Shown here piece after piece: positions 1-52,110 of a stretch of DNA of 52,110 nucleotides (the stretch's first letter is position 1; each line of letters opens with the position of its first letter). This DNA is from Macrostomum lignano (lineage: Eukaryota). A program made the translations under genes and the position numbers. Location of the stretch: assembly GCA_002269645.1 (NCBI GenBank), contig NIVC01003242.1, positions 1-52,110 of the forward strand. Direction: 5' to 3'. Under the pieces are notes generated by a model. The model was not told the origin of the DNA. It was given only the letters and a program-made list of their open reading frames with translations, and did not search any database.

Positions 1-999
1 AACAACATAGTGTGCATACACACCTGGCATGTACTTTTTAGAATCACATAAAAGAGTTGCTATAAAAAAGATAGAAAAATTCACTTTTAAGCGTAAATTT
101 CAAGTTTTCTAGTTTTTAGCTTGTAATAAGACAGTCAAACAAATGTTTATACATATTAATTTTCCACTCTAAATAGTATTAGCAAGAAATATAAATAATC
201 AACCAAATTATCAGCCAAAAACATTTTTATAGAACTCAAAAAATGTCATTTATTGTTGCAACACTGGCCTAGACAAGTGTGGGCACTAGGCATGCATTTA
301 CTATGGGCTAGGGCCTAAGATAAGGGACGTTATCCTGAAGATTCCCGCAATTTAATTATAACCCCCACCCCCCATGGCACCACCCTTGAATAGGGGCAAA
401 ATAATTTGTAAAATAATTAAACGCAGGAATCTTCAAGATTGCCAGATAAGGATGGTCAGTTAAAAACTATAAGTTACTATAACTATTTATCATTCACTCT
501 TATTTTTACTCTTATATTTACAGTACAGCTTCTTAGAATCTGTTAACGTCAAAGTAGTGGCTCTAAATTTTGGCAATAAGATGGCCGCCATCTCTATTGC
601 TGAATGGATTCTATATTAGTGACATGGCCACCTTCTATGTCTTTAAGTTTGAACCCATTCAAATATTCAATGCTAACGACACGGCCGCTGGCGATGTGCA
701 GGGTTCCCACTCTCGAGTGTGACACAACGGAAACGGCCGCCGTCTGTAAGTTTTTGCATTATAGACACGGCCACCGTGTATTTAAGCGTGGCCTTTGTTT
801 TATATGTTGACCGTAGAAATAGTGTCATTTTGACGATTAATACGGTCACATTACAATAACAACTGCCAATTAAAAAACGAAAATTCCCTAGGCAGGCTAG
901 GCTAAGCTGTCCATAATATGTCATGACAGATAAGACAGAACCCAAATATGCTCAAAATGTGAATCATTACTAGTTTCCACCGCAAAATGCGATACTTAC

Positions 1000-1081
1000 T
1001 TGTCGTGCACCCTGTACAGTAGATTGTAGGAGGATTTTCTTTACACCTAGAACACTTCATGTTCTCTCTGTGGTGCAATAC
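1000..1081 (-). CDS. Candidate isolated exon encoding a B-box-like CxxC...CxxC motif (rest of gene not located)
   Basis: 82-nt segment with a strong acceptor (TTTTCATTTTCATTTTCTCAG|) and a GTAAGT donor. It reads VLHHRENMKCSRCKENPPTIYCTGCTT (C-x2-C-x8-C-x2-C). No partner exon was identified. Confidence 0.3.
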
Positions 1082-2057
1082 CTGAGAAAATGAAAATGAA
1101 AACAAGCCTAGTTTTAAATAAAAATTTTATGTATATAAACAAAATGTGTACAATTTAGTGTAAATATATTGGGAAAGTTTAATTAACTACTTCTCTTGCT
1201 TACCACATCTTAAAAAATTGATAGAAAATTGCGCAGTGTAAATGTTCATGTTAATAAAAAACAAGATTCAAAAGCCGTTGGATGTCCACGACAGGGTTTG
1301 AAGTATTGAAGAGTGAAGACTATCAAAACACGCGCTTCTGATTGCGGATTATTTATTTGTACAATCCTTGCCGATCGATCTAAAAACGCGAGAGAGACAC
1401 AAGAATTTTATACGACCCACAGCTTCACTACACTGTAAATTTGACTGAGTCTTGATTGCTTTCCATTTCAAATTTATTCTTCAAAATTTAAATTCATACT
1501 GTATTGAATACTGTATTGAATACTGTATTGATTAATTGAGAGAGAAACCAACTGAGAGACCAACACTGTATCGCGTCACTCACTGTGCGCGGGCCCAATT
1601 TGCTACATGAACAACCGCGTGGTAGAATCAAACTATATATATAACTGTACATGTAGTGTGCTAGAAAAACTACTAAACTCTGAGATTAACTTCAGGCTTC
1701 ATTCCAGTCTCTAAATTGGCATCCCCTTTCGGAGAACATGTATGTACACATAACTTATTGTATAAGTTAGAGATTAGTAGGTATCCGTCTGTATCTTAAT
1801 ATATACATGTATGTACAAAAAGAGAATTGCATGCAAGTTTGATTTAACTCCTCGAGTGTTTGATAGCAGACAGAAAAGAGTTCGGTGTATTTGTCGACGT
1901 CGTAATTTTTCCATTAAATCAAACCAAACAAAATACATCAGTAAAATTTATCCAGCACAACTAGACGACATAGAATCAGCCATGCCAGTATTTTAATCTC
2001 CCAATTAGTACGAGCACAGCACTATACTACTGCATGCTACTACTGTTTGAACTGACA

Positions 2058-2926
2058 TCAGTAGCCTTTGCAGAACACTCTGGCATCGCACATGCGTCTG
2101 CAACAAAGCGACATGGCCACGTGCGCGTGAATTCCTCGTTTAATTATTGTCGCCTCATCCGGCAGGTCGTAGTCGTCTAGAAGCTCGTCAGTTGATTTCT
2201 CGCTAGTAGGATTGCCGGATCTCTTTTTCCAAGGTGGCGGAGCGCTTAGCGGCAGATATCCCTGAGCCGGATCGATGTAGCCGTCTTTGATTCCGAAGCT
2301 CTCCAGGTGTTTGATTGACCGGCAGAGCCAGTCTATCATGACGGGACTGGCCGGACCGCAATAAAGGAATTTGCCTTTATGCTGTGACTCAGCGCTGGTT
2401 TGACAGCAGCTGATAGACATGACCATCAGACTCAGCAGGAGCGCAAGGCCTTGGCTCTTCCGTCCGGATAGAAGGTTTACTAAAACAAAGGATATAAAAC
2501 GTTACATGAGCGTATACAACAATGAGAAGTGAGTGCCGGTCTTAAGAAGCAAAGCCAGGAGGGCAAAAAATGGAAAGTTGAATGAAGTATGATAATCATT
2601 ACAGTGAAGGGTTCACATTCTGAAAGTAGAGCTACAATTTTGAGAAATCTAAAGTCAATAACTGGGGAAAAGTAGCTATTTAGTGGCTAACACGTCCTGA
2701 ATGCATTGGCATTGGCGGAATGAGCATGATTTACCGATAGCCCCTTCACTTGGCTGTGGGTCAACCTGTAGAAGTATCAGAAGCCCTCCTGCAAAACGAA
2801 TTACAATTCAGCGACACAGCAACATAACATTGGCACGCTGTAGCAAAGCGTCTCAATTTCTACCTACTAAAAATTAATGACGCGAAAATGTACATGTCAG
2901 GTGAACAAAAACTTACCGTTACCCAT
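2058..2926 (-). CDS. Insulin/relaxin-like prepropeptide (143 aa, 2 coding exons)
   Basis: Exon 1 is 2926-2917 (ATG GGT AAC G|GTAAGT) and exon 2 is 2479-2058 (TTTTAG|TA AAC). The phase matches and the CDS is 432 nt. Protein: MGNVNLLSGRKSQGLALLLSLMVMSISCCQTSA (signal-like), B chain ...FLYCGPASPVMIDWLC (CG, C-x11-C as in insulin B), KKR, acidic C-peptide, KR, A chain GIHAHVAMSLCCRRMCDARVFCKGY. Confidence 0.85.
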
Positions 2927-4829
2927 GACAAATGCTCGTTCGCGGCTCAAAAAACTCTTAAATCTACTATTTAGGAAGCTGAGAATTTCCAACTGGCAGC
3001 GACTGTGCGCTCGGCTACGAAGCGCTTAAATATACGCTTCAACGCTTCATCCGATCTTAGTCCAGATGTTCCACATCAATACGTTTCTCATCTTGATTCC
3101 AGATGCCTTCTATCATCCATGAGAATTCGCTGAGGCTTCTCAAAAGATTGCGAATCGGGTTACTGCGCGGCTAAACGCGTTATGTCGACAAAAATTGTGA
3201 AATAAAAATACTTGGATTAAGCGCACAGTGCTAAAGATTTTCTTACTAGATTACCGTCTGGGACAGCGTCAAAAGGCGGGAACAGAACATTTTCTTTAGA
3301 GAATAAAGAAAATTAGAAAATTCTGCGAGTCGATGCTTAATTTTCCTGTCCGCCAGTTGAAAATTCTAAGAATCGAAGAATGAGCCATATTTGGAACGAT
3401 TAAAATCATAGCTGTCATCATGACTCTTGCATGGGGTCACGCAAGTCTGCCCTTAACACTAGAACTACCAAGAGGGGGGCCCTGACAATGTTTTTTTGCT
3501 GCGCCGGACTGAATACACTGGCGCTTATGGGAAAAATCCGACCTTCTGGCAAAATTGTCGAATATCTCGACGGTCCGAAGGGCTGGCAAATTGATTCTTG
3601 TTCGAAAAGGGGCGCAACTAAAAGTTAGCCTGTGTTCTTGAATTTCGTGTGCCTGCGTTGCTCCGTTCCGGCTCAGCAAAAAAATTGTCAGGGGGGATTC
3701 CCCCACTCTTGGTAGTTCGACGGGCGCAAAAATGGCTTGGTATTCCTACAGTCAATATAAGCGAGCAGAGACGGAAACAGGCGCAAACCAAGCACCAGGG
3801 TTTTGCTAAGAGGCGCCAGCACCGCCGCATTGCCCAGGAGCGCCAGCGCAAGGAACGCCAGCGCTAGGGGCACCAGAACCTTGTATGTCTCCCAAATAGC
3901 TTGTTGTGATTGTATAATTTTATTCTCTGGATAAAGCATTTCAGTTCAAGATATTGGGCCGTATGCAGAAAGCTCTGTCTAGGGTAGTCCGGTCTTGAAA
4001 AGCTAGTCTGGACTTGGATTTGATATGCAGAAACGCAAAGTCAGACCGGTCTACTATAGACAGAACTAGGGTAGCTAGACCATAGACTATAGACTGAACT
4101 ACCCAAGCCCGGACTAGCTAGTCTGGACTAAGCTTTCTGCATACGGCCCATTGACTATGTAGCTCTGGATTATCGGTAATCCATAATCTATATTTACGAT
4201 AGATTGAAATCTATGGAAAGAGGTAGATTCATGCCCGTTGCCAATGGTATGCGCTGCAGGATGTTGCAAGTCTGTATAAAAAATATGTTCCTGACATTTG
4301 GACAAGCGCTTGTGAAATTCAATGTAAATTCAAAAAATTATCTTAATATTTATAGCGAAAGTGGGTGCTTGGAAAATTGATTTTAATATTGATATTTTAT
4401 TCGCCGTGTTATCGCCTTGATTAGTATCCCTGAAAATTAACTTTGAAGGTATTGCTTAATCAAAAGCATAGGATTTACGTCAAAAATAAACAGATACATA
4501 CATTTTCTATAGGCACATACTAGCTAATAATTTTTATCCAAGTTTGATGAGACGCATCGGAGGCATTTGCTTTATGGCGATAATCGTTCATTATAGATAA
4601 TCAGAAGAATGAAAAACTGTTGTTGGGAATCAGCGAGCTACAGGGCTAATGGATGATAATCATGCAGTGTAGTGTCGATAATAAATTAATGGTTCCCGTA
4701 AATAGCTGCTAAAACGTACATGTAATCATGACTACTGTGAATATACTAGTCCTTCCTTCACATGGAAATCCACCGATCAATCCAGCTTGATTCGAGGGCT
4801 GCCATTCCGATCAGCTGACTGTCTGCCTG

Positions 4830-7800
4830 TCAGTTGGGGTTGTCGACCACCAGCACGGCCTCGCCGTCCTTGTCGATGCACTGGCAGTTTTCTCTCTCCT
4901 CGCCGTCGATATTTCTGCAGCGAAACGGCGCCGCGCCAATCGGCTTGCAGCTGAAGTCGGCAGCCACGCATTCTGGAATGGGCGAGTGGTGGACTGCCTA
5001 GCAACTGGATTGTTGCGGAGCTGGCCGGGTGCAGTGACTGAGGGAGGGCTGGCAGACATGCAGTGACTGAGGGAGGGCTGGCAGACATGCAGTGACTGAG
5101 AGAGGGCTGGCAGACATGCAGTGACTGAGGAAGGGCTGACAGACATGCAGTGACTGAGAGAGGGCTGACAGACATGCAGTGACTGAGGGAGGGCTGGCAG
5201 ACAGGCAGTGACTGAGGGAGGGCTGGCAGACAGGCAGTGATTGAGGGAGGGCTGGCAGACATGCAGTGACTGAGGGAGGGCTGGCAGACATGCGGTGACT
5301 GAGGGAGGGCTGGCAGACATGCAGTGACTGAGGGAGGGCTGGAAGACATGCAGTGACTGAGGGAGGGCTGGCAGACATGCAGTGACTGAGGGAGGGCTGG
5401 CAGACATGCAGTGACTGACGGAGGCCTGACAGACATGCAGTGACTGAGAGAGGGCTGGCAGACATGCAGTGACTGAGGGAGGGCTGGCAGACATGCAGTG
5501 ACTGAGGTGACTTGGAGCGGCGCTGGAAGGGACGAAGAGCTGTGCTCAGACACTTACTCTTAACTGAGGTTGGCAGGATTGTATTGCCGCTGGAGTCGCA
5601 GCGGAAGTCGTGGCACATGTTGGTCCAAGACTCGCCTTCCAGGTGGTCGCTGCCGTCAATCGGGTCGACGCAGGTGGCCTCTAAAAGTTTGGTTCGCATT
5701 AAGTGCATTTTGTAAGCTCAACTGAGCATGGTGCACTGAATATTTGAGTATTATTCTCCAGCAGTCCTATGACGGCTGGCGTTTGAGGCTACGGTGTCTT
5801 TTCATCGAGAGTCTTTCTTTGGGACTTAAAAGCAAACGATGAAAAAACTTTTGATTAAACCGTGAAATTCTTGGGCAACTCTTGAGCAACTCTCAAGTCT
5901 CAAGCTTTCAGGAAAATTGCACGTAGTATACTAGTATATCTGCATTATTGGTATTAAAGAGCATCACAATACACATGAAATATATAAAAATGAGAAAATG
6001 CAACTTACTGCAACCATTACTTATTTCGTTTTTAAGATGCTTGATGCACGTTTTAACGGTGTCGTACTTGAAGTTTACAGTAGTGGTTTGCATTTTTTCA
6101 GACAGACACGGCGAGATGGACTTGATCTGAACATCAGCTTCGCACAACTTCGGATTTGGCGGCCTCAACTCCATGCAAAGCCGAGCTGAGAAATTTAAAG
6201 CCCAATGCCTTAGCTGATCAAATTTGTTGAAAATGAAGAGGTTTCTGTCGGACTCTGGCGAGGTGATCATCTTCAGCTCGTCACTGTAGTTGCAGGATGT
6301 TGTGTAGTTGCTATGAGCACGGCACACTTATCGCATTTATAAAATAAATCAAAGGCGCACGGGGAGGGCCATAAACAAAGAAGTACAAAGTACAAGTACA
6401 CAACACTGAATAGTCAGGGCTCATAGAGGTGGGATATGTGAAATTCTGAGTCTTTAGTCTCATAGAGAATCGCTGACATACCAAAACTTAACGTGCTGAT
6501 TGCTGAACTTTTTTGGCTCATGGAAGAATGACTAAACTGCTGTGACTTTCAGCAGGTTTAGAGTTAGTGCTTAGGATAGGGGTATTAGGCTCAGGGTTAG
6601 GGTTCAACCTTAAGAGAATCACCCTGCTAATCATTAAATGTTTATAGAGGAATCGCTCTATAATCATAGATACTCATAGGCTCATGAAGGAAATCGCTTG
6701 AACTCTGCGGCTTAGGGGAATTGTTCACATGCTGAGGCTCATGGAAGGATTGCTGATATCCTAAACCCCCCTCGAACCACCCCCCCCCCGGAAAGCTAGC
6801 CCCCTAATTGTATTGGTTCGTGAGAAGATCGCTGAAATGCCAAAGCTCATTGGGGAGTGGCTTAAATCCTTTGGCTCATGGGGGTTTCACAGATGCTTTG
6901 AGCCAAAGCTCATAGGGGATCTGATATCTTAGTCTGGACAGTTGTCTTAATAACTTAATGATTGAAGGCTTTAAAAATTAATGTGGGGCGCAGATTTCTA
7001 GTTCAGTGCTAAATTTACCCCTTCATTGGAGCAAAGGAGAGTTGTCTTATATATTTATAAGTCCACTACAAACAGGTGTCCTTGGTGTGAAATAATAACT
7101 CACTTCATACTGCTTTAAACTTTTCATACGCATTTTAAAGCAGTATAGAAATAAGACATATAAAGTGGCTCGCTGGTTCACGTCAAATTGGCTGTCGACT
7201 ACTGTGCCATAAAGAGTGACACCGTGGTATTTAATATTTTTACATGTATATGATTTGTATACTTTTCAGCCAACCATTGGTGCTAATATCTTCTATCTAA
7301 TTTAAAGAACAAACTAAAAATTAGATCTTAACAAAGAGGCTCACAAATCTAAGTCGTCCGGGTCGCCGACTCCTACCGCATACAGCGTAACATTGTCGTT
7401 TTTTATATCCGACACTGCTTGAAACAGTACTTTGGCGTCGTTGCTCCCACCATCCGTGATGATAACGACGGCTTTGAAAACGTTTCTTCGGCCTTTTGAG
7501 TTAAAAAGCTTCTTGACTTCTTTGAGGGCGGAACCAGTGTTCGTGCCCCGAAACTCATACTTATCTAAAGTCTTGCTTTCGTCAACCTTTCTTATAATTT
7601 CGAAGACGTCGAACTCATCGCCAAGGTTTACAAGCATTTCTAGCAGATCCCTCACATGCGTTTTTGATCCTGAGTAAGACAAATAGCCATTGAAGGATAG
7701 CACGCCAATCCGAACATTTCTCTCTCCAATGTTTAGCGACCGGATTATTGCCTTCGCTGAGTCCACAACAGTGCTGTAGTGACTAAGAATGCTACCAGAT

Positions 7801-10800
7801 TTATCCAGCATTATCACCACATCTGCGACTTGATCTTTGCACTCGCTTGCTCTGACTGGAAAATAGACATCCTTGCAGACTGACTGACTGACTGACTGAC
7901 TGACTGACTGACTGACTGACTGACTGACTGACTGACTGACTGACTGACTGACTGACTGACTGACTGACTGACTGACTGACTGACTGACTGACTTGAGTGA
8001 GTGACTGGCTGACTGACTGACTGACTGACTGACTGACTGACTGACTGACTGACTGACTGACTGACTGACTGACTGACTGACTGACTGACTGACTGACTGA
8101 CTGACTGACTGACTGACTGACTGACTGACTGACTGACTGACTGACTGACTGACTGACTGACTGACTGTGACTGACTGACTGACTGACTGACTGACTGACT
8201 GACTGACTGACTGACTGACTGACTTGAGTGAGTGACTGACTGACTGACTGACTGACTGACTGACTGACTGACTGACTGACTGACTGACTGACTGACTGAC
8301 TGACTGACTGACTGACTGACTGACTGACTGACTGACTGACTGACTGACTGACTGACTGACTGACTGACTGACTGACTGACTGACTGACTGACTGACTGAC
8401 TGACTGACCTGAGTGAGTGAGTGAGTGAGTGACTGACTGACTGACTGACTGACTGACTGACTGACTGACTGACTGACTGACTGACTGACTGACTGACTGA
8501 CTGACTGACTGACTGACTGACTGACTGACTGACTGACTGACTGACTGAGTGACTGACTGACTGACTGACTGACTGACTGACTGACTGACTGACTGACTGA
8601 CTGACTTGAGTGAGTGACTGACTGACTGACTGACTGACTGACTGACTGACTGACTGACTGACTGACTGACTGACTGACTGACTGACTGACTGACTGACTG
8701 ACTGACTGACTGACTGACTGACTGACTGACTGACTGACTGACTGACTGACTGACTGACTGACTGACTGACTGCTAATTGACGAATGAGTGACTGACTGGC
8801 TGACTGACTGGCATTAGTTGGAAGAACAGGAAACTCACAGCAATTCACTTTGTGCTTCTCCTCATATGTCACGCACGACTGTTTCTTTCGGTCGAGAAAC
8901 TGCAGCGTCTCAACGATTTCCGAATTGCCGTCAGCTTGGCATGAGCCAATGCTTCGCTCCATCTTGTAGCAGGAATGTTTCTCGGCTGCAAGTGTTTGCT
9001 GGTGTACTTTACTCCAGTGTTGCCTTATTGTATATAAATTGATTATATATATGACTTTATTTGAACATCAATGATTGTAAATAGATGAAAGTGAAAGTAG
9101 ATATGCAATTAGTGGTTTGGTATGGTATAGTTGAGGTAGGTGCGCTGTGTGGGTGGGAACACCGCAAGATTAGGGTGGGGGCGTGAATTTAGGGGCACCG
9201 TGAGGGCAGCGGTACTGTGTGGGCTGTCACAGGTCGCTGTGGTGTTTTAAAAGTACTGTACGCTAGTACTGTACTGTACGCTCTATCTTGCTGCAGGACT
9301 GCTTCTCGACTGGAAACGGCAAATGTTTAGATAATGTTTTTACCTGGTTTTGGAGCAGTCTTAGTGAAGAATGAATTTCGTTGTGAGCTTACTGGAAGCA
9401 TTACGAGCGTAGTGCAATTTAAAGAGTTACAAGTAATATCAGGTGTTGCATATCATAGCAACGTGTTTCTCGGGATTATTCGCAGATCAAGAATATTCGC
9501 TAGGACATCAGCCTAACGCTGTAAACTTTACATTCGCTACATCTCGCCGTAGTTTAGGGCCAAATGAGTTTCAACTCATTACTACACTACTGTACGCTCG
9601 AGTTCTATGTTTTATCCCGAGGTAAAAAAAACACATGCATGCTGCTTTCTGTTCTGGACTGACCTGACCCCGTAGCTTTCTTCTCTCATCCCACCTTGAA
9701 AAGCAATGTTTTACTAGTGATTTATAACCAGTGGTCGACTGTTAAGAGCTTCTAAATAGCAGCTACGCAAAATAAGCACGTTACCGTAAAATTTTAACCA
9801 GTGCTTCTTTAAATTGAGTTTCATCAGACCACAGGTGTCCAATTGCTAGTGGGACAAATTAGCTCGTGGCTAAGAATAAACTAACACTTAAGATTGTAAC
9901 AAAGTGCCACTGGACTGATCTGAGGTTGCTTGAGGGTGTAGGGTTGCGTGGGAACGTTGACTTTGCTTAAGTAGCTCGTATATGCACATCATTAATTGTT
10001 CTTCCTCGCGTGTACGTGTATCGTGTGTACTAATGTACGTCGTGCCTATTAAATATATATACGCGTGCGCTAACTAGCAGTCGCTCAAGTTTTTCTCGAG
10101 AAGTTCTAACTTACTCAACCAGTGGAGTCCGCGTGAGTTATTACAGAGATAAAGTTTACAACAGGCGGACAGTAAAAGTTGTAATCGATCGATGGTGAAC
10201 CTAGGCAAGGGCCAAACTGGAGGGCCAGGAGAGCGCCAAAGTGGAAAGTCGGGAGATGGTGAACCTAGGCAAGTGCCAAACTGGAGGGCCAGGAGAGCGC
10301 CAAAGTGGAAAGTCGGGAGAGGGTGAACCTAGGCAAGGGCCAAACTGGAGGGCCAGGAGAGCGCCAAAGTGGAAAGTCGGGAGATGGTGAACCTAGGCAA
10401 GGGCCAAACTGGAGGGCCAGGAGAGCGCCAAAGTGGAAAGTCGGGAGATGGTGAACCTAGGCAAGGGCCAAACTGGAGGGCCAGGAGAGCGCCAAAGTGG
10501 AATATCGGGAGATGGTGAACCTAGGCAATGGCCAAACTGGAGGGCCAGGAGAGCGCCAAAGTGGAAAGTCGGGAGATGGTGAACCTAGGCAAGGGCCAAA
10601 CTGGAGGGCCAGGAGAGCTCGCCAAAGTGGAAAGTCGGGAGAGGGTGAACCTAGACAAGGGCTGTCGCCCACCAAGGCCATTAGGCCATAAGTTTCGGTA
10701 CAGCGCTCGGGAAGAGATTCTCGCGCGTTCAGCCAGTCGGAACAGTAAACGTGCTTATTTGTAGCTGATTCAGTGGATAGATGACATTCTGATGTTACAA

Positions 10801-13800: not shown

Positions 13801-14676
13801 CTGCCACGGCACGAATACTACATGAAAATGAATACGGCATCAATACGACATTGCGACATACATGCGATGTAAAAACATCACGTTGTGCGGGACGACGTCG
13901 TTTCGACGTCGTTTCTCTCAGTGGGTGGGGTTGGTTTATCCTTCAAATAAACTTTCTGGCTGCACCATTATTAAAAAAAGTTGCTTTTTAACGGATGATA
14001 AAACTGTGCTATAAAGACTTTCAGCGTTCAGGCATCAACTGAAACTATATATAGCTATGAAAACAAATTGTATGTGAGCTAAAGAAAAAAAAACAATAAA
14101 ATTTAATCACCTGTTCCACAATCCACCGATTCCGATTGCGTGCACTGCGTTTCCCGTCAACTTCAGGACTGCGACTTCCGACTTAATCGAAGCCAGTTCC
14201 GCGTCGCTCGATCCCGTTATTCTCTCAGCGCACTGCCTGTCCTTTACCAGAGCTAAGAGTCTTGGAGTCGGAGCAGCCCTGGCCTTGTTGAGCACGGACT
14301 CCCGAGCCAGCTTGATGCCCTTCGAGATTTCGGCTCGTTCGGAACTCATCGTCAGCCTGTCGACCGCGGAGTTGAAGTCCGACAGAGACGTCAGGTCGTC
14401 GAAGTTGGCGAGAACCTGCGCAGTCTGCGACATGCCGATCAGAGCCAGTCGAGTTTTTGTGGGACCGATTGGAAATTTAGAGACCAAGGCCTTCACCTCT
14501 GAGAGCAGCCTGTCGAACTGTGTTTGAGAGCATGAAGACGATGTGTCCACTGCGACCACCAAGTCCAGGTTGATGCAGGGGCTTGTCGAGCAGCTGAGCT
14601 CAATCTGATGCACCAGTATTAAGAGAGCAATGACAGACAGAACCTTCCAGCATCTTGGATAAGTGTTGGAGAGCAT
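4830..14676 (-). CDS. Secreted double-VWA protein, copy A (671 aa, 7 exons)
   Basis: Exons 14676-14111, 11817-11567, 8985-8839, 7855-7345, 6283-6009, 5680-5558, 4972-4830. All introns are GT-AG with phases 2,1,1,2,1,1, and the exons sum to 2016 nt with no internal stop. It has a signal peptide, VWA1 (DLVVAVDTSSS), VWA2 (DKSGS..GTNTG..ITDG) and a C-terminal 8-Cys domain, with no TM segment. Confidence 0.88.
5030..5508. repeat. 29-bp minisatellite in intron 6 of copy A (~16 units)
   Basis: Unit GCAGTGACTGAGGGAGGGCTGGCAGACAT with point variants. It lies between the GTAAGT donor (5557) and the CCAG acceptor (4973). Confidence 0.95.
6400..6930 (-). repeat. Copy of a degenerate interspersed repeat family (CTCAGCAATTCCC/AGCCTTGA-type subrepeats, TTAGGG-like motif) in intron 4 of A
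   Basis: Reverse-complement similarity to 20500-20760, 45470-46460 and 47400-47770. A near-identical copy lies at ~27380-27900 in C. Boundaries are approximate. Confidence 0.45.
7878..8772. repeat. (GACT)n tetranucleotide array in intron 3 of copy A
   Basis: ~0.9 kb of GACT with GAGT/CTTGAGT interruptions, between the donor at 8838 and the acceptor at 7856. Confidence 0.97.
10194..10660. repeat. 64-bp minisatellite in intron 2 of copy A (~7 units)
   Basis: Unit GGTGAACCTAGGCAAGGGCCAAACTGGAGGGCCAGGAGAGCGCCAAAGTGGAAAGTCGGGAGAT starts at 10194, 10258, 10322, 10386, 10450, 10514 and 10578. Confidence 0.95.
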
Positions 14677-15199
14677 TTCGATTTGTGAGCCGATTATTAA
14701 AGTGTAAGCTACGCTTTTCTTTCACAGCTAAAACTCTATGAAGTATCGCTTAAGCTGGTCCCTTTGACTTTCGTACTTATATTGAAGACTTTGGTTCGTT
14801 TGTCTTTGGCAGAAGCTCCTTTCAGTGTTACAGAAACGCGTCTCACTGTACCTAAGCAAGTGAAATATTTACTGCCATAAACAACTAAAGTTTTTACATA
14901 CCCTTTGCGCTTGAATTCTGAGCTTTAAATTGACAGTGTAAGAAATTAAGTAGTTTTTTTGCAAATCAAATTTCTGCTATAATGCAGATGTTCATGGGGC
15001 CCGATCCATGCTCGAAATGCTGGTCTGCTATTAGTATAGATGGCTTTTGTTGTTGTTGGGGGAGAGAGCTTGTCTCGCCTGGGATCAGCCTAGGGAAAAG
15101 CTCTACCGCGGGGGTATTTAAGAAGTTTGCAAAAATCACTGGCCTGAAAATGCACCACTGAAACGAATTAACCGCCATACACGCCCCATCGACCCACCC

Positions 15200-17624: not shown

Positions 17625-24807
<7,183 letters not shown>

Positions 24808-25592: not shown

Positions 25593-28500
25593 TCAGTTGT
25601 CGACCACCAGCACGGCCTCGCCGTCCTTGTCGATGCACTGGCAGTTTTCTCTCTCCTCGCCGTCGATGTTTCTGCAGCGAAACGGCGCCGCGCCAATCGG
25701 CTTGCAGCTGAAGTCGGCAGCCACGCATTCTGGAATGGGCGAGTGGTGGACGGCCTAGCAACTGGATTGTTGCGGAGCTGACCGGGTGCAGTCAGACACG
25801 CAGTGACTGAGGGAGGGCTGGCAGACATGCAGTGACTGAGGGAGCTCTGGCAGGCATGCAGTGACTGAGGGAGGGCTGGCAGACATGCAGTGACTGAGGG
25901 AGCTCTGGCAGGCATGCAGTGACTGAGGGAGGGCTGGCAGACATGCAGTGACTGAGGGAGGGCTGGCAGACATGCAGTGACTGAGGGAGGGCTGGCAGAC
26001 ATGCAGTGACTGAGGGAGGGCTGGCAGACATGCAGTGACTGAGGGAGGGCTGGCAGACATGCAGTGACTGAGGGAGGGCTGGCAGACACGCAGTGACTGA
26101 GGGAGGGCTGGCAGACATGCAGTGACTGAGGGAGCTCTGGCAGGCATGCAGTGACTGAGGGAGGGCTGGCAGACATGCAGTGACTGAGGGAGGGCTGGCA
26201 GACATGCAGTGACTGAGGGAGCTCTGGCAGGCATGCAGTGACTGAGGGAGGGCTGGCAGACATGCAGTGACTGAGGGAGGGCTGGCAGACATGCAGTGAC
26301 TGAGGGAGGGCTGGCAGGCATGCAGTGACTGAGGGAGGGCTGGCAGACATGCAGTGACTGAGGGAGGGCTGGCAGACATGCAGTGACTGAGGGAGGGCTG
26401 GCAGACATGCAGTGACTGAGGGAGGGCTGGCAGACATGCAGTGACTGAGGGAGGGCTGGCAGACATGCAGTGACTGAGGTGACTTGGAGCGGCGCTGGAA
26501 GGGACGAAGAGCTGTGCTCAGACACTTACTCTTAACTGAGGTTGGCAGGATTGTATTGCCGCTGGAGTCGCAGCGGAAGTCGTGGCACATGTTGGTCCAA
26601 GACTCGCCTTCCAGGTGGTCGCTGCCGTCAATCGGGTCGACGCAGGTGGCCTCTAAAAGTTTGGTTCGCATTAAGTGCATTTTGTAAGCTCAACTGAGCA
26701 TGGTGCACTGAATATTTGAGTATTATTCTCCAGCAGTCCTATGACGGCTGGCGTTTGAGGCTACGGTGTCTTTTCATCGAGAGTCTTTCTTTGGGACTTA
26801 AAAGCAAACGATGAAAAAACTTTTGATTAAACCGTGAAATTCTTGGGCAACTCTTGAGCAACTCTCGAGTCTCAAGCGTTCAGGAAAATTGCACGTAGTA
26901 TACTAGTATATCTGCATTATTGGTATTAAAGAGCATCACAATACACATGAAATATATAAAAATGAGAAAATGCAACTTACTGCAACCATTACTTATTTCG
27001 TTTTTAAGATGCTTGATGCACGTTTTAACGGTGTCGTACTTGAAGTTTACAGTAGTGGTTTGCATTTTTTCAGACAGACACGGCGAGATGGACTTGATCT
27101 GAACATCAGCTTCGCACAACTTCGGATTTGGCGGCCTCAACTCCATGCAAAGCCGAGCTGAGAAATTTAAAGCCCAATGCCTTAGCTGATCAAATTTGTT
27201 GAAAATGAAGAGGTTTCTGTCGGACTCTGGCGAGGTGATCATCTTCAGCTCGTCACTGTAGTTGCAGGATGTTGTGTAGTTGCTATGAGCACGGCACACT
27301 TATCGCATTTATAAAATAAATCAAAGGCGCACGGGGAGGGCCATAAACAAAGAAGTACAAAGTACAAGTACACAACACTGAATAGTCAGGGCTCATAGAG
27401 GTGGGATATGTGAAATTCTGAGTCTTTAGTCTCATAGAGAATCGCTGACATACCAAAACTTAACGTGCTGATTGCTGAACTTTTTTGGCTCATGGAAGAA
27501 TGACTAAACTGCTGTGACTTTCAGCAGGTTTAGAGTTAGTGCTTAGGATAGGGGTATTAGGCTCAGGGTTAGGGTTCAACCTTAAGAGAATCACCCTGCT
27601 AATCATTAAATGTTTATAGAGGAATCGCTCTATAATCATAGATACTCATAGGCTCATGAAGGAAATCGCTTGAACTCTGCGGCTTAGGGGAATTGTTCAC
27701 ATGCTGAGGCTCATGGAAGGATTGCTGATATCCTAAACCCCCCTCGAACCACCCCCCCCCGGAAAGCTAGCCCCCTAATTGTATTGGTTCGTGAGAAGAT
27801 CGCTGAAATGCCAAAGCTCATTGGGAGTGGCTTAAATCCTTTGGCTCATGGGGGTTTCACAGATGCTTTGAGCCAAAGCTCATAGGGGATCTGATATCTT
27901 AGTCTGGACAGTTGTCTTAATAACTTAATGATTGAAGGCTTTAAAAATTAATGTGGGGCGCAGATTTCTAGTTCAGTGCTAAATTTACCCCTTCATTGGA
28001 GCAAAGGAGAGTTGTCTTATATATTTATAAGTCCACTACAAACAGGTGTCCTTGGTGTGAAATAATAACTCACTTCATACTGCTTTAAACTTTTCATACG
28101 CATTTTAAAGCAGTATAGAAATAAGACATATAAAGTGGCTCGCTGGTTCACGTCAAATTGGCTGTCGACTACTGTGCCATAAAGAGTGACACCGTGGTAT
28201 TTAATATTTTTACATGTATATGATTTGTATACTTTTCAGCCAACCATTGGTGCTAATATCTTCTATCTAATTTAAAGAACAAACTAAAAATTAGATCTTA
28301 ACAAAGAGGCTCACAAATCTAAGTCGTCCGGGTCGCCGACTCCTACCGCATACAGCGTAACATTGTCGTTTTTTATATCCGACACTGCTTGAAACAGTAC
28401 TTTGGCGTCGTTGCTCCCACCATCCGTGATGATAACGACGGCTTTGAAAACGTTTCTTCGGCCTTTTGAGTTAAAAAGCTTCTTGACTTCTTTGAGGGCG

Positions 28501-31500
28501 GAACCAGTGTTCGTGCCCCGAAACTCATACTTATCTAAAGTCTTGCTTTCGTCAACCTTTCTTATAATTTCGAAGACGTCGAACTCATCGCCAAGGTTTA
28601 CAAGCATTTCTAGCAGATCCCTCACATGCGTTTTTGATCCTGAGTAAGACAAATAGCCATTGAAGGATAGCACGCCAATCCGAACATTTCTCTCTCCAAT
28701 GTTTAGCGACCGGATTATTGCCTTCGCTGAGTCCACAACAGTGCTGTAGTGACTAAGAATGCTACCAGATTTATCCAGCATTATCACCACATCTGCGACT
28801 TGATCTTTGCACTCGCTTGCTCTGACTGGAAAATAGACATCCTTGCAGACTGACTGACTGACTGACTGACTGACTGACTGACTGACTGACTGACTGACTG
28901 ACTGACTGACTGACTGACTGACTGACTGACTGACTGACTGACTGACTGACTGACTGACTGACTGACTGACTGACTGACTGACTGACTGACTGACTGACTG
29001 ACTGACTGACTGACTGACTGACTGACTGACTGACTGACTGACTGAGTGAGTGACTGACTGACTGACTGACTGACTGACTGACTGACTGACTGACTGACTG
29101 ACTGACTGACTGACTGACTGACTGACTGACTGACTGACTGACTGACTGACTGACTGACTGACTGACTGACTGACTGACTGACTGACTGAGTGACTGACTG
29201 ACTGACTGACTGACTGACTGACTGACTGACTGACTGACTGACTGACTGACTGACTGACTGACTGACTGACTGACTGACTGACTGACTGACTGACTGACTG
29301 ACTGACTGACTGACTGACTGACTGACTGACTGACTGACTGACTGACTGACTGACTGACTGACTGACTGACTGACTGACTGACTGACTGACTGACTGACTG
29401 ACTGACTGACTGACTGACTGACTGACTGACTGACTGACTGACTGACTGACTGACTGACTGACTGACTGACTGACTGACTGACTGACTGACTGACTGACTG
29501 ACTGAGTGACTGACTGACTGACTGACTGACTGACTGACTGACTGACTGACTGACTGACTGACTGACTGACTGACTGACTGACTGAGTGAGTGACTGACTG
29601 ACTGACTGACTGACTGACTGACTGACTGACTGACTGACTGACTGACTGACTGACTGACTGACTGACTGACTGACTGACTGACTGACTGACTGACTGACTG
29701 ACTGACTGACTGACTGACTGACTGACTGACTGACTGACTGACTGACTGACTGACTGACTGACTGACTGACTGGCTAATTGACGAATGAGTGACTGACTGG
29801 CTGACTGACTGGCATTAATTGGAAGAACAGGAAACTTACAGCAATTCACTTTGTGCTTCTCCTCATATGTCACGCACGACTGTTTCTTTCGGTCGAGAAA
29901 CTGCAGCGTCTCAACGATTTCCGAATTGCCGTCAGCTTGGCATGAGCCAATGCTTCGCTCCATCTTGTAGCAGGAATGTTTCTCGGCTGCAAGTGTTTGC
30001 TGGTGTACTTTACTCCAGTGTTGCCTTATTGTATATAAATTGATTATATATATGACTTTATTTGAACATCAATGATTGTAAATAGATGAAAGTGAAAGTA
30101 GATATGCAATTAGTGGTTTGGTATGGTATAGTTGAGGTAGGTGCGCTGTGTGGGTGGGAACACCGCAAGATTAGGGTGGGGGCGTGAATTTAGGGGCACC
30201 GTGAGGGCAGCGGTACTGTGTGGGCTGTCACAGGGCGCTGTGGTGTTTTAAAAGTACTGTACGCTAGTACTGTACTGTACGCTCTATCTTGCTGCAGGAC
30301 TGCTTCTCGACTGGAAACGGCAAATGTTTAGATAATGTTTTTACCTGGTTTTGGAGCAGTCTTAGTGAAGAATGAATTTCGTTGTGAGCTTACTGGAAGC
30401 ATTACGAGCGTAGTGCAATTTAAAGAGTTACAAGTAATATCAGGTGTTGCATATCATAGCAACGTGTTTCTCGGGATTATTCGCAGATCAAGAATATTCG
30501 CTAGGACATCAGCCTAACGCTGTAAACTTTACATTCGCTACATCTCGCCGTAGTTTAGGGCCAAATGAGTTTCAACTCATTACTACACTACTGTACGCTC
30601 GAGTTCTATGTTTTATCCCGAGGTAAAAAAAACACATGCATGCTGCTTTCTGTTCTGGACTGACCTGACCCCGTAGCTTTCTTCTCTCATCCCACCTTGA
30701 AAAGCAATGTTTTACTAGTGATTTATAACTAGTGGTCGACTGTTAAGAGCTTCTAAATAGCAGCTACGCAAAATAAGCACGTTACCGTAAAATTTTAACC
30801 AGTGCTTCTTTAAATTGAGTTTCATCAGACCACAGGTGTCCAATTGCTAGTGGGACAAATTAGCTCGTGACTAAGAATAAACTAACACTTAAGATTGTGG
30901 CAAAGTGCCACTGGACTGATCTGAGGTTGCTTGAGGGTGTAGGGTTGCGTGGGCATGTTGACTTTGCTTAAGTAGCTCGTATATGCACATTATTAATTGT
31001 TCTTCCTCGCGTGTACGTGTATCGTGTGTACTAATGTACGTCGTGCCTATTAAATATATATACGCGTGCGCTAACTAGCAGTCGCTCAAGCTTTTCTCGA
31101 GAAGTTCTAACTTACTCAACCAGTGGAGTCCGCGTGAGTTATTACAGAGATAAAGTTTACAACAGGCGGACAGTAAAAGTTGTAATCGATCGATGGTGAA
31201 CCTAGGCAAGGGCCAAACTGGAGGGCCAGGAGAGCGCCAAAGTGGAAAGTCGGGAGATGGTGAACCTAGGCAAGGGCCAAACTGGAGGGCCAGGAGAGCG
31301 CCAAAGTGGAAAGTCGGGAGATGGTGAACCTAGGCAAGGGCCAAACTGGAGGGCCAGGAGAGCGCCAAAGTGGAAAGTCGGGAGATGGTGAACCTAGGCA
31401 AGGGCCAAACTGGAGGGCCAGGAGAGCGCCAAAGTGGAAAGTCGGGAGATGGTGAACCTAGGCAAGGGCCAAACTGGAGGGCCAGGAGAGCGCCAAAGTG

Positions 31501-34500
31501 GAAAGGGAGATGGTGAACCTAGGCAAGGGAGGGTGGAACCTAGGACAAGGGCTGTGGAAAGTCGGGAGAGGGTGAACCTAGACAAGGGCTGTCGCCCACC
31601 AAGGCCATTAGGCCATAAGTTTCGGTACAGCGCTCGGGAAGAGATTCTCGCGCGTTCAGCCAGTCGGAACAGTAAACGTGCTTATTTGTAGCTGGTTCAG
31701 TGGATAGATGACATTCTGATGTTACAACCACGCAGCGTGCTCAGCGGGTACGATCCGGGAAGAGAGTACACAAGGCACACGGAGCTCGGCCTTCAGCACC
31801 TCTATCTCGCAACTCTTTAGCGGGTTTTCACCTACCGCGCCAACGCTGTCACAGGAAACTTTGGTGCTAACAGTACCTAAAAATAGCTGTTTATACTTCG
31901 TTGCATCAAAAGAGCAAGCGGCTGTTACGAAGCAGTGTCCAGTTTTTAAAGCTGTCCCGACCCGGAATTTCGTTCACATAGTTTCACAGTTAACTCGGAC
32001 AATCTAGTTGATCAAACGATATTGGGCCAGAGTCACTTCCAGGCCTAGATGATACCTCGGCTTAGGGGCACTCTGTTCTGGCCTCATCCTTGCCTCTAGG
32101 GTCCTTGCCTATCCAGTCATTCTTTCCATAAAAATCTGTTGACAATAGCTCGTATCACCACAAGAAGTACTTTTGTGGGCAAACGCGTCTTCAAAATTGC
32201 ACTGTAATATACGTGAACCGCAATAAATTAACTAATAGACCAACTAAATGACAAGACAGTTAATGGTCCGCCTTTATTAGTAGTGCCTCGTGTGCTGGTT
32301 TACTTTCTACTTCAAGTACATGTTAAACTACTCATATTTGCAATTTACGCTCATACAAGATACTGGCAAATCAGAAAACTTTTCATTTTTTCCAACCCTA
32401 AGGCCCAAGAAGTCTTTGCGTTTGAGTAAAAATTGAGCCCTCAGAGAGAAAGAAATCAGCAAATGGAGTAACTCACCGCAAGACTGAAATGATCGAGCAA
32501 TCTGCTGTCTGCAGACTTCCATGCCAGATGAAGTGAAAGCACTGTCGTTTACCGTTAATACGTGCTGCGACTTTCCAAAGCAAGTTTCACGCTTCACAGT
32601 CCGACCCGAGCTTTTGCAGGCTGGCTTCGGGCAAACTTTATTGTTTAGCGACTTGGCGGACTCCATGGCCTTGTTTGTGTTCTTGAAGAGCAGGTAGTTG
32701 GTTCCAAAAATAACCTTCAGTTCGTGGCTAAAATTTATTTTGCCGACAAGATGCAAGCTAAATCATCATGTTAAATTATCCACTATGTCAGGATGTAATT
32801 CAACCCACTTATATAATCGAATTTGAAATCGAAATGATATCAGCACCCAAATGACAGATGCAGCCATTGGGGCATGCATTGTTCAGTACCTGCTAGATGC
32901 AAATCAGCGACTTGCGAGAAGGAATGAAGTGGAACAGTGACGCAACTGTGACGTTGCCAGTTTAAGGTTATCCCGCAAAAGGGCCGTTGGACTACAATTT
33001 CACTACAATTTCTCATTTAAAATTCTCTAATCTTGTATTCTCACGTTTACTTGTAGTAGCGCCCAGCGAATCTGTATCAGTTGCTAAATCACTGCGTACT
33101 TTGTAATCTTTGCGTACGTTTGTAGAATCTCGCGCGATCGATAATTTCTGTTTCTTGTTTTTCCCTCGCCAGCCAATGAAAACTCTCCGCATATATTATG
33201 CTAACCCTCCTGCGCTCCTTGATTAACCCCGCCTGGCGGCGGGCTGGGGGTTTTCACGCTCTTCCCCTCGTCGCTCGCTTTTCCTTTTGGTTTCTCCCTT
33301 CCTTGCCTTTCCTTCTCTCTCCTTATTTCGCAACCAACCTTTAGTAACAGCAGATAGATTAAAATAGCACTTAAGGCCACGAGGCAATTTTCCTCTTTCG
33401 TTCGTTAAATCAATTTTTCATTTGAACACGAACAGTACTAACTTAAAACGACAAAAAAGATAACAGCATGTCGTGGAAACCTTCGTAGCATTTAGAAAAG
33501 CATGAAATTGAAATCGCGCCAAAGCGAGCGAGCTCCCGCATTGTGAAATTAATGTTGCACAGCTCCAGTGCGGGACGCACTTGCCCAGGGGGTACTTTAA
33601 ATGAAGGTGCTGCAGGGCGACCAGTCATGTCGTTGAATATAATTGTATGTTTTTAAGCAGTAGCTGACTTATAAATTATTTTCTTCGTACCCCTTCTAGT
33701 TTTCTAGTGATATCACCGCATTTTTAACCATAGACAGTTGCTAAAAGACAGTTGTTGCTTTACTTTCTTACACGCCTTGGCGCGATCTCAATCTCATGCT
33801 CTTCTAAATGCCACGAAGAATTCCACGACATACTGTTATCGTTTTTTGTCGTTTTTTAAGTTAGTACTGTTCGTGTTCAAACGAAAAAGTAATTTAACGA
33901 ATGAAAGAGAAAAATTGCCTGCCACGGCACGAATACTACATGAAAATGAATACGGCATCAATACGACATTGCGACATACATGCGATGTAAAAACATCACG
34001 TTGTGCGGGACGACGTCGTTTCGACGTCGTTTCTCTCAGTGGGTGGGGTTGGTTTATCCTTCAAATAAACTTTCTGGCTGCACCATTATTAAAAAAAGTT
34101 GCTTTTTAACGGATGATAAAACTGTGCTATAAAGACTTTCAGGGTTCAGGCATCAACTGAAACTATATATAGCTATGAAAACAAATTGTATGTGAGCTAA
34201 AGAAAAAAACAATAAAATTTAATCACCTGTTCCACAATCCGCCGATTCCGATTGCGTGCACTGCGTTTCCCGTCAACTTCAAGACTGCGACTTCCGACTT
34301 AATCGAAGCCAGTTCCGCGTCGCTCGATCCCGTTATTCTCTCAGCGCACTGCCTGTCCTTTACCAGAGCTAAGAGTCTTGGAGTCGGAGCAGCCCTGGCC
34401 TTGTTGAGCACGGACTCTCGAGCCAGCTTGACGCCCTTCGAGATTACGGCTCGTTCGGAACTCATCGTCAGCCTGTCGACCGCGGAGTTAAAGTCCGACA

Positions 34501-34792
34501 GAGACGTCACGTCGTCGAAGTTGGCGAGAACCTGCGCAGTCTGCGACATGCCGATCAGAGCCAGTCGAGTTTTTGTGGGACCGATTGGAAATTTAGAGAC
34601 CAAGGCCTTCACCTCTGAGAGCAGCCTGTCGAACTGTGTTTGAGAGCATGAAGACGATGTGTCCACTGCGACCACCAAGTCCAGGTTGATGCAGGGGCTT
34701 GTCGAGCAGCTGAGCTCAATCTGATGCACCAGTATTAAGAGAGCAATGACAGACAGAACCTTCCAGCATCTTGGATAAGTGTTGGAGAGCAT
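25593..34792 (-). CDS. Secreted double-VWA protein, copy C (669 aa, 7 exons; near-identical to A)
   Basis: Exons 34792-34227, 32727-32477, 29986-29840, 28825-28315, 27255-26981, 26652-26530, 25729-25593; the sum of 2010 nt is open. It differs from A by ~4 aa substitutions and a 2-aa C-terminal deletion (VVDN* vs VVDNPN*). Confidence 0.88.
25797..26478. repeat. 29-bp minisatellite in intron 6 of copy C (~23 units)
   Basis: Same unit. It includes variant units (GGGAGCTCTGGCAGGCAT) not seen in A. Confidence 0.95.
28848..29775. repeat. (GACT)n array in intron 3 of copy C
   Basis: ~0.93 kb with GAGT interruptions only, between the donor at 29839 and the acceptor at 28826. Confidence 0.97.
31195..31590. 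repeat. 64-bp minisatellite in intron 2 of copy C (~5 units plus rearranged partials)
   Basis: Units start at 31195, 31259, 31323, 31387 and 31451, followed by truncated units. Confidence 0.93.
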
Positions 34793-34995
34793 TTCGATTT
34801 GTGAGCCGATTATTCAAGTGTAAGCTACGCTTTTCTTTCACAGCTAAAACTCTATGAAGTATCGCTTAAGCTGGTCCCTTTGACTTTTTCGTACTTATAT
34901 TGAAGCCTTTGCTTCGTTTGTCTTTGGCAAAAGCTCCTTTCTGTGTTACTGAAATGCGTCTCACTGTAACTGTACACGGGGATTCTGAGCAAGTA
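34793..34995 (-). promoter_or_regulatory. Conserved ~200-bp proximal promoter/5'UTR of the VWA genes (copy C instance)
   Basis: Near-identical upstream of A (14677-14880), B (24808-25050) and D (50581-50781, inverted). A TATAAG-like box lies at 34894-34899, ~100 bp before the ATG. Confidence 0.5.
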
Positions 34996-51910: not shown

Positions 51911-52110
51911 GTGAGTTGGGAAAACTAAAATCTCGATTATTAGAATGCGCATTTTTGTTGGGCAAAAGTGAGATCGACATAGTCAAAATTCAGCGTGTGA
52001 CTAAAGAAGTGAGTTGGATTTAGTCCCGTATCGATGTGCCATAGACAATGGATTTGATTTATAGTCAGTTTGAAAGTTGAGAAATAATGGAAATAGGAAA
52101 GTTTAGCCAA

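Follow-up and report, generated by a model that had tools for sequence, protein, structure and literature searches.

The 52,110-nt contig NIVC01003242.1 of the free-living flatworm Macrostomum lignano (assembly Mlig_3_7, GCA_002269645.1), which was analysed over its whole length and is referred to here as the window, raises the question whether its gene Mlig028676, located at 2058-2926, encodes an insulin-like peptide (ILP) with an unusually spaced A chain. Such a divergent ILP had been proposed in a first-pass annotation made from the DNA letters, which pointed at the shortened last loop of the A chain. In our assessment Mlig028676 is, with a probability of about 0.6, an unannotated, Macrostomum-restricted and relaxin-like member or variant of the insulin superfamily.

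At this locus M. lignano expresses a gene for a 143-aa secreted-looking precursor, and both the gene model and its transcript-derived annotation are established. All parts of the gene lie on the minus strand. Coding exon 1 (2917-2926) is the 10-nt segment ATGGGTAACG, encoding Met-Gly-Asn and base 1 of Val4 and followed by a GTAAGT donor; it is separated from coding exon 2 (2058-2479, residues 4-143, TGA stop at 2058-2060) by an intron of 437 nt (2480-2916), which starts with this GTAAGT and ends with a polypyrimidine tract and TTTTAG (GT..AG). Joined in frame, the two exons give 432 nt, corresponding to 143 aa plus stop, and tblastn of the product against the window returned 100% identity over 2480-2061. 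Since an in-frame stop stands just 5' of exon 2, this exon needs an ATG spliced on from upstream. The product is identical over its full length (100%) to the GenBank entries PAA52434.1/PAA91742.1 of M. lignano (hypothetical protein BOX15_Mlig028676g4/g2), and on NIVC01003242.1 the gene is annotated over exactly 869 nt, matching 2058-2926. It should be added that the GenBank annotation of this assembly was made solely from a genome-guided RNA-seq transcriptome (StringTie/TACO, de novo assembly, TransDecoder; PMC5730564), so that transcripts underlie the junction between 2917 and 2479. The same junction is crossed by an independent UniProt model, which belongs to the older assembly (...FVMGN/VNLLSG...). 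The spliced 143-aa product of the first-pass annotation was confirmed in this way, and the junction whose absence from transcripts it had named as grounds for abandoning its reading is present. It was equally right that the mechanical ORF list truncates the gene and hides the signal peptide: the only open reading frame (ORF) starting from an internal ATG in this list, which is bacterial in style and merely a guide for eukaryotic DNA, covers 2058-2426, begins at Met22 and gives 122 aa without the hydrophobic leader.

The order of segments in the precursor, with putative cleavage sites, matches that of the insulin superfamily: signal peptide (residues 1-33), B chain (34-87), KKR (88-90), connecting (C) peptide (91-116), KR (117-118) and A chain (119-143), with cysteines at residues 28, 29, 44, 56, 129, 130, 134 and 140. 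Exon 2 opens with the predicted remainder of the signal peptide (residues 4-33; 2391-2479), consisting of an n-region with R10 and K11, the h-region GLALLLSLMVMSI, with which an AlphaFold2 helix at residues 12-26 coincides, and the c-region SCCQTSA. Judged by hydropathy and the (-3,-1) rule, on which the signal-peptide call rests, the likely cut is after Ala33 (TSA/ESQ; the corresponding ASA/ESK of a paralogue described below is canonical). The putative 54-aa B chain (2229-2390), composed of ESQHKGKFLYCGPASPVMIDWLC and a conserved 31-aa extension ending in PPPW, opens with ESQHKGKFLY-C-G-x10-C. It displays the framework C44-x11-C56 (2322-2360) with the B-chain hallmark of a glycine (Gly45) directly after the first cysteine and a proline at +5. 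The extension behind the second cysteine, described earlier as Pro-rich and of about 30 aa, counts 31 residues including 5 prolines. The putative prohormone-convertase site KKR (2220-2228) is unchanged in the paralogue and persists even in a decaying copy of it; an acidic C peptide of 26 aa (2142-2219; isoelectric point 4.05) follows, and a second putative convertase site, KR (2136-2141; RR in the paralogue), stands ahead of the A chain. The putative A chain of 25 aa (2061-2135), GIHAHVAMSLCCRRMCDARVFCKGY, starts with GI directly after KR, has 10 residues (GIHAHVAMSL) before CC, and continues as RRM-C-DARVF-C-KGY, so that its framework is CC-x3-C-x5-C (C129, C130, C134 and C140; 2070-2105). 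Both the overall layout and the GI-x8-CC-x3-C-x5-C description of the first-pass annotation were reproduced at the level of individual residues. The pattern CC-x3-C-x(4-9)-C has this single match in the six-frame translation of the window.

With canonical insulin, IGF and relaxin the precursor shares the segment order, the Gly after the first B-chain Cys, C-x11-C, CC-x3-C and the Gly-Ile start of the A chain behind KR; it differs from them by a last loop of x5 against x8, by the lack of a profile match at E<=10 and by the lack of a match to a solved chain. An aromatic residue just before the last cysteine is shared as well: counted back from this cysteine in the established insulin numbering, Phe139 sits at the place of Tyr A19, and the shortening to x5 removes the equivalent of A12-A14, the first turn of the second A helix.

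The reality of the short loop was assessed by comparison of gene copies. Positions 1-8929 of the window are 99.8% identical to NIVC01000075.1:172451-185319, a part of a 278-kb contig; this second copy is a haplotig or has arisen by duplication very recently, in line with the redundancy known for the DV1 assembly. From a third copy a variant of 141 aa is obtained in which the chains are unchanged. The paralogue Mlig014741 lacks introns; its product of 126 aa is 74% identical to that of Mlig028676 and has a different signal peptide. At least five copies of it, all with the same encoded protein, are arranged in tandem at spacings of 4.3-5.1 kb on NIVC01002732.1 (at about 17798, 22943, 32444, 36730 and 40921; loci L001-L004); gene names go up to g7, and the paralogue also occurs on a second contig. 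Codon comparison of Mlig028676 with this paralogue gave dN 0.026 and dS 0.572 (non-synonymous and synonymous divergence, respectively) for the B segment, dN 0.034 with saturated dS for the A segment, and dN 0.028, dS 0.776 and omega 0.036 for B and A taken together. The spacer between KKR and the second dibasic site was unalignable (27 versus 22 residues, counting the first basic residue of the second site). Conserved end blocks around a variable middle are, as read from these alignments, the textbook pattern of a prohormone with an excised spacer.

The x5 loop is found in the window gene, in its two further copies and in at least five paralogue copies, and a synonymous difference (AGA versus AGG) between window gene and paralogue lies within it with the frame kept. 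A sequencing or assembly artefact is excluded by this in-frame retention across copies with a synonymous change inside. The sequencing error that the first-pass annotation had allowed for as a possible refutation was accordingly rejected as the source of x5, the same loop being repeated across all genomic copies; the loop is real and under purifying selection.

A third family member was recognised as an uncalled 109-aa ORF in the paralogue array (L001:2740-3069, plus strand). Signal peptide, B-chain C-x11-C and KKR are all retained in it, but the connecting peptide is gone, as are exactly the two A-chain cysteines equivalent to A6 and A11 (CC to SC, and C to F). Its B region shows a dN/dS of 1.23 against the neighbouring copy, a neutral value, and the ORF is therefore probably a decaying pseudogene. 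The paired cysteine loss was considered as support for insulin connectivity and rejected, as the copy evolves neutrally and the same C1-C3 pairing is predicted if the A segment were a self-contained peptide. It was also observed that UniRef entry A0A1I8GWI6 (179 aa, ‘DDE_Tnp_1_7 domain-containing protein’) falls into the 90%-identity cluster of the ILP-like protein; this entry probably stems from a gene model of the older assembly that is chimeric or wrongly named.

The closest architectural counterparts were found among relaxin-like peptides (RLPs). The supplement of a 2025 study on relaxin evolution holds relaxin/insulin/IGF-type precursors of 31 invertebrate species (PMC11863921), and two of its entries labelled ‘RLP’ have the x5 loop, namely Sepioteuthis lessoniana ENSUKOP00000000666.1 and Octopus bimaculoides XP_014770853.1. 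Both combine a B-chain C-x11-C with an A chain in which exactly 10 residues are followed by CC-x3-C-x5-C and a one-residue tail. A joint-profile search recovered the O. bimaculoides protein (UniRef ‘Insulin-like domain-containing protein’), together with an orthologue from O. vulgaris and two further squid-like sequences; x5 is present in all of them. The RLPs of the nemertean Lineus and the annelid Owenia carry 11 residues before CC and the canonical x8. Across a sample of about 45 sequences of the PMC11863921 dataset the A chains were nearly all x8, the sole other exception being three tandem Lumbricus terrestris paralogues with x9 and a B-chain C-x12-C; in these (ENSVPPP00000031830/32285/33472, chromosome 7) the spacing (B C-x12-C, A CC-x3-C-x9-C) is altered in the opposite direction. 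Two premises of the first-pass annotation consequently turned out too strict: 10-11 residues ahead of CC are normal in relaxin-like peptides, where it had expected CC a few residues after the initial Gly, and a last loop of x8 is not kept by the cephalopod RLPs (x5) or the Lumbricus paralogues (x9). Nor is the formula unique, since the cephalopod RLPs share x10-CC-x3-C-x5-C together with the B-chain C-x11-C.

The 10 residues before CC, equal in number to those of the cephalopods, represent a long A-chain N-terminus of relaxin type. Together with KR followed by G-I/V and the B-chain motif C-G-x3-P, they place the architecture nearest to the relaxin/Dilp8-like branch, i.e. the spiralian RLPs. 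MAFFT, unaided, aligned all six cysteines of the Macrostomum chains with three RLPs, bringing the B-chain frameworks into the same columns, and behind the first B-chain cysteine Macrostomum, octopus, Lineus and Owenia have Gly/Ser at +1 and Pro at +5 in common. In a permutation test with cysteines fixed and the remaining residues shuffled (p-values uncorrected for multiple comparisons), the RLP set overall gave z=2.27 and p=0.014, and five insulin/IGF-type peptides gave z=1.52 and p=0.07. By region, the values for the RLP set were z=2.41 for the B chain, z=0.77 for the A-chain N-terminus and z=-0.06 for the x5 loop; by peptide, they were p=0.0016 for Owenia, p=0.022 for Lineus, p=0.13 for Octopus and p=0.60 for squid. 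These figures suggest that the precursor leans weakly but directionally towards spiralian relaxin-like peptides, most of all towards those with x8. As no such affinity is seen with the x5 cephalopods, convergence is a likelier source of the shared x5 than common inheritance. A phylogenetic tree is precluded by the shortness and divergence of the peptides.

The cephalopod peptides have the same layout of signal peptide, B chain, dibasic site, spacer, dibasic site and A chain as the M. lignano precursor, as well as C-x11-C, 10 residues before CC, a short tail and, as shown below, no hit with the Pfam Insulin profile. They differ in that their B chains stop 3-6 residues past the second cysteine, where M. 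lignano has the conserved 31-aa extension, and in that their tail reads ‘CP’ instead of ‘CKGY’; there is no residue-level similarity to M. lignano past the cysteine scaffold. Owenia fusiformis CAC9481874.1 and Lineus longissimus LOC135488467 share the B-chain C-G-x3-P...C with x11 and, like M. lignano, a long A-chain N-terminus directly after KR (G-V/I in Lineus), and they showed the best residue-level similarity of all comparisons. They differ by the x8 loop and by relaxin-type basic residues of the B chain, and the Lineus peptide is recognised by Pfam Insulin.

A number of results weigh against placing Mlig028676 in the insulin superfamily, and the first-pass reading of a divergent ILP was upheld in part: a real, spliced, secreted-looking precursor with insulin-superfamily architecture stood, while matches to Pfam, PDB and HMMER profiles were not obtained. 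The classical A-chain signature CC-x3-C-x8-C is not found, the last loop being x5. A Pfam scan of the 143-aa product and of the paralogue at E<=10 returned no families, the expected Insulin match included. HMMER with a two-paralogue profile against 1.84 billion representatives gave self matches and noise, and three marginal matches were rejected as long repetitive low-complexity proteins. Among PDB sequences, neither the profile nor the A or B chain taken singly (hmmsearch/phmmer) picked up an insulin, relaxin or IGF chain, and matches to the vasopressin receptor and PGRP-LB were dismissed as chance (E 0.4-0.6). A word-indexed search of 5.8 billion proteins returned M. lignano copies only; the family is restricted to Macrostomum among the databases searched. 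Alignment of the Macrostomum pair with the RLP trio by hhalign covered only the stretch from KR to the last A-chain cysteine, with P=0.014 and a probability of only 3.2%. The permutation p-values given above are modest, uncorrected, and nil for the cephalopod x5 peptides and the x5 loop.

Structure prediction and finer sequence features add to this side. AlphaFold2 models reached a predicted local distance difference test score (pLDDT) of 44.2 for the full precursor (alignment of 2 sequences) and 42.3 without the signal peptide (5 sequences), too low to read a fold. At this low confidence both runs placed a helix at 49-64, with helices at 112-131 and 136-140 in the first run and one helix at 112-136 in the second; these positions are compatible with the helices of the insulin fold and speak, if weakly, in its favour. 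Foldseek of the weak model against PDB gave meaningless matches (E about 5) and was discarded. The relaxin receptor-binding cassette consists of R/K at Cys+2 and +6 with a hydrophobic residue at +9/+10; RLP B chains, those of the cephalopods included, carry K/R at Cys+2 and +6/+7. The basic residues are absent from M. lignano, where Pro46 stands at +2, Val50 at +6 and Asp53 at +9. The signal-peptide cut is ambiguous, as the (-3,-1) rule also permits SIS/CC, after Ser27, which would keep Cys28-Cys29 (2403-2408), residues of the signal-peptide c-region within a SISCCQ kept in both paralogues. The mature peptide could therefore have 8 rather than 6 cysteines and, if so, would resemble some molluscan and decapod ILPs. 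Furthermore, the 2 and 4 cysteines could pair within their own segments, and M. lignano lies outside the receptor survey (PMC11863921) drawn on below.

The missing Pfam hit should, however, be given little weight. In a control, PF00049 detected the x8 RLP of Lineus (26.3 bits, cutoff 23) and missed the recognised x5 RLPs of cephalopods as well. Insulin-superfamily architecture is supported and the reading as a divergent ILP partly so; the insulin fold is not yet proven, the searches and models proposed in the first-pass annotation neither confirming nor excluding it, and strict family membership is not assignable by loop length and profile match. The precursor nevertheless has the build of a relaxin-type ILP, and cephalopod peptides of identical formula are already counted by specialists as members of that family.

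Among other explanations, the one that survives best, though we consider it unlikely, is a convergent look-alike, i.e. a Macrostomum-specific neuropeptide or secretory precursor giving rise to two independent peptides with neither interchain bonds nor an insulin fold. One would be a 54-aa peptide with a C44-C56 loop, and the other a 25-aa peptide with two internal disulfides and a framework-I-like formula. Framework-I conopeptides (CC-C-C, 3/5 loop class) have the same CC-x3-C-x5-C loop formula as the 25-aa A peptide. This is a likeness of pattern with no homology claimed, and the organisation of conopeptide precursors is entirely different; in M. lignano the motif follows a dibasic site and forms the C-terminal end of a two-block prohormone that has a C-x11-C block as well. 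The even number of cysteines in each segment would allow both to be self-contained, homology to insulin-family profiles or structures is not detectable, and x5 does not conform to the canonical insulin signature. Conservation of the 31-aa B extension equals that of the cysteine core, as would be expected of an independently bioactive peptide, and two conserved blocks with a variable spacer and dibasic sites are equally typical of multi-peptide neuropeptide precursors. Chance convergence would nevertheless have to account for a specific joint set of features in insulin order, comprising C-G...x11-C, a dibasic site, KR followed by GI, CC-x3-C and a last cysteine 3 residues from the C-terminus. 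It would also have to account for the exact formula in recognised cephalopod RLPs and for the weak directional residue similarity to the B chains of annelid and nemertean RLPs. The cysteine pair lost in the decaying copy does not discriminate between two independent peptides and a two-chain hormone.

A bulk secreted non-hormonal cysteine protein (gland, seminal-fluid, adhesive-associated or antimicrobial), single-chained and with incidental dibasic sites, appears improbable. In its favour stands the array of at least five (names suggest 7) identical intronless tandem paralogues, a pattern often tied to high-output secretion; the restriction of the family to Macrostomum and the impossibility of a family assignment by Pfam would also fit. 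Hormone genes can, however, be tandem and intronless too: bombyxin genes are tandemly amplified, intronless insulin-like hormone genes, and the Mlig014741 array with its identical coding sequences is similar to them. The parallel has its limits, as bombyxins belong to another phylum and another peptide subtype, and the window gene has an intron and is single-copy on its contig. Divergence confined to the spacer along with strict retention of KKR and K/R-R argues for spacer excision, and a gland product is without positive support. An annotation or assembly artefact, be it a non-coding or mis-spliced ORF suggested by the 10-nt first coding exon and the 122-aa ORF of the mechanical track, or a sequencing deletion behind x5, is effectively refuted by a model built from RNA-seq assemblies with a second annotation across the same junction, by the B+A dN/dS of 0.036 and by an x5 kept in frame, with a synonymous difference inside, through three gene copies and at least five paralogue copies.

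If Mlig028676 is a relaxin-like member of the insulin superfamily, its maturation may be pictured as follows. The signal peptide would be removed, probably after Ala33, and the propeptide would fold oxidatively with the interchain bonds C44-C130 and C56-C140 and the intra-A bond C129-C134, by analogy with insulin. A PC2-type convertase would then cut after KKR90 and KR118, carboxypeptidase would trim the basic residues, and the predicted product would be a two-chain hormone of a 54-aa B and a 25-aa A chain with a heterodimer mass of 8862.26 Da. The M. lignano pc2 homologue has a prohormone-processing phenotype, and its knock-down is lethal in juveniles (PMC4490696).

As for the receptor, RXFP/LGR3- and LGR4-type receptors are reported to be missing from the surveyed flatworms (Schmidtea, Clonorchis), and RXFP/LGR3-type receptors also from molluscs (PMC11863921). 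Because of this absence in surveyed flatworms and because the basic motif of relaxin B chains is absent from the M. lignano peptide, an insulin-receptor-type tyrosine kinase or an unknown receptor appears, by analogy, more likely than an RXFP/LGR3-type G-protein-coupled receptor (GPCR). The altered A20-B19 geometry and different receptor put forward in the first-pass annotation are pure inference, and structural and receptor consequences of the x5 loop are speculative. It is conceivable, though rather doubtful, that x5 arose independently in cephalopods and macrostomids and marks relaxin-like ligands re-targeted after the loss of RXFP/LGR3, for example to an insulin-receptor kinase or to an unknown receptor. 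Were it true, it would represent a natural and repeatable remodelling of ligands after receptor loss, in Macrostomum coupled to the 31-aa B extension and to gene amplification.

Within flatworms, ILPs are described from schistosomes (SjILP, SmILP and ShILP): their A chains bear the signature CCCX2CX8C, their B chains measure 51-53 aa and their gene has two exons (PMC5391603). They belong to the same phylum and share the long B chain and the two-exon gene with M. lignano, and three disulfides have been proposed for them (PMC5391603). Compared by description, they differ by the x8 loop, by A chains of 36-37 aa and by an intron of 8-12 kb against 437 nt. Since schistosome ILPs have x8, x5 cannot be called common in the lineage already, and its unusual character within flatworms, as asserted in the first-pass annotation, holds against these described peptides. 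The long B chain, which had been counted there as atypical, has precedents both in relaxin-like peptides and in the schistosome ILPs. The sole planarian entry in the PMC11863921 dataset is a truncated insulin-type B chain. A literature search on Macrostomum ILPs and on Mlig028676/Mlig014741 found no paper.

Two further elements flank the gene on the minus strand, both as pattern matches only: a TATA-like TATATTTAA (3026-3034), 108 nt upstream of the ATG and a possible core promoter, and an ATTAAA polyadenylation-like signal (1992-1997), 60 nt past the stop codon. A scan for bacterial promoters and terminators gave background levels and is irrelevant to a eukaryote. The neighbouring genes were considered as functional context and rejected, as they consist of tandemly repeated VWA-domain genes and the remnant of a retroelement. 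A unit of about 10 kb is present in three tandem copies over 4800-35100 (approximately 4.9-15, 17.6-25 and 25.6-35 kb), with copies 1 and 3 being 98-100% identical and copy 2 80-95% identical. Each unit carries ORFs with a VWA domain (Pfam E about 1e-19 to 1e-20) as well as internal satellites whose periods are 29, 8 and 64 nt; ORFs of the repeat units lie on the minus strand at 14107-14676, 21055-21696, 24238-24807, 28311-29963 and 34223-34792. Pfam matches to ‘Gp5_C/DUF445’ in these units are driven by low-complexity repeats. The neighbour of the gene on the near-identical contig is annotated as a VWA protein of 671 aa. An inverted partial VWA unit occupies 50605-51917, with a VWA-domain ORF at 50782-51354 on the plus strand, and is 91-98% complementary to 14107-14853, 24235-24699 and 34223-34886. 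The plus-strand ORF at 37052-37846 (264 aa) has weak matches to zf-CCHC and retroviral-type aspartyl protease below the Pfam cutoffs, and is probably a decayed gag/protease remnant of a retrotransposon.

Insulin-type signals control stem cells, regeneration and reproduction in planarians and other animals, and M. lignano is a transgenic model for these same processes that is amenable to RNA interference. Annotations of Mlig028676 and of its amplified paralogue go no further than ‘hypothetical protein’, and the gene family is likely missing from profile-based inventories of flatworm ILPs, as it is undetected by Pfam Insulin and other sequence searches. The x5 loop is new for flatworms, with a precedent already in cephalopods. 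If the insulin fold does not apply, the family would represent convergence on the insulin cysteine pattern and would call for caution in motif-based ILP mining. If it does, macrostomids would be the second independent lineage, after cephalopods, in which the A11-A20 segment shows more plasticity than the textbook signature would lead one to expect, and the family would inform on minimal insulin/relaxin scaffolds and on ligand-receptor co-evolution after the loss of relaxin GPCRs.

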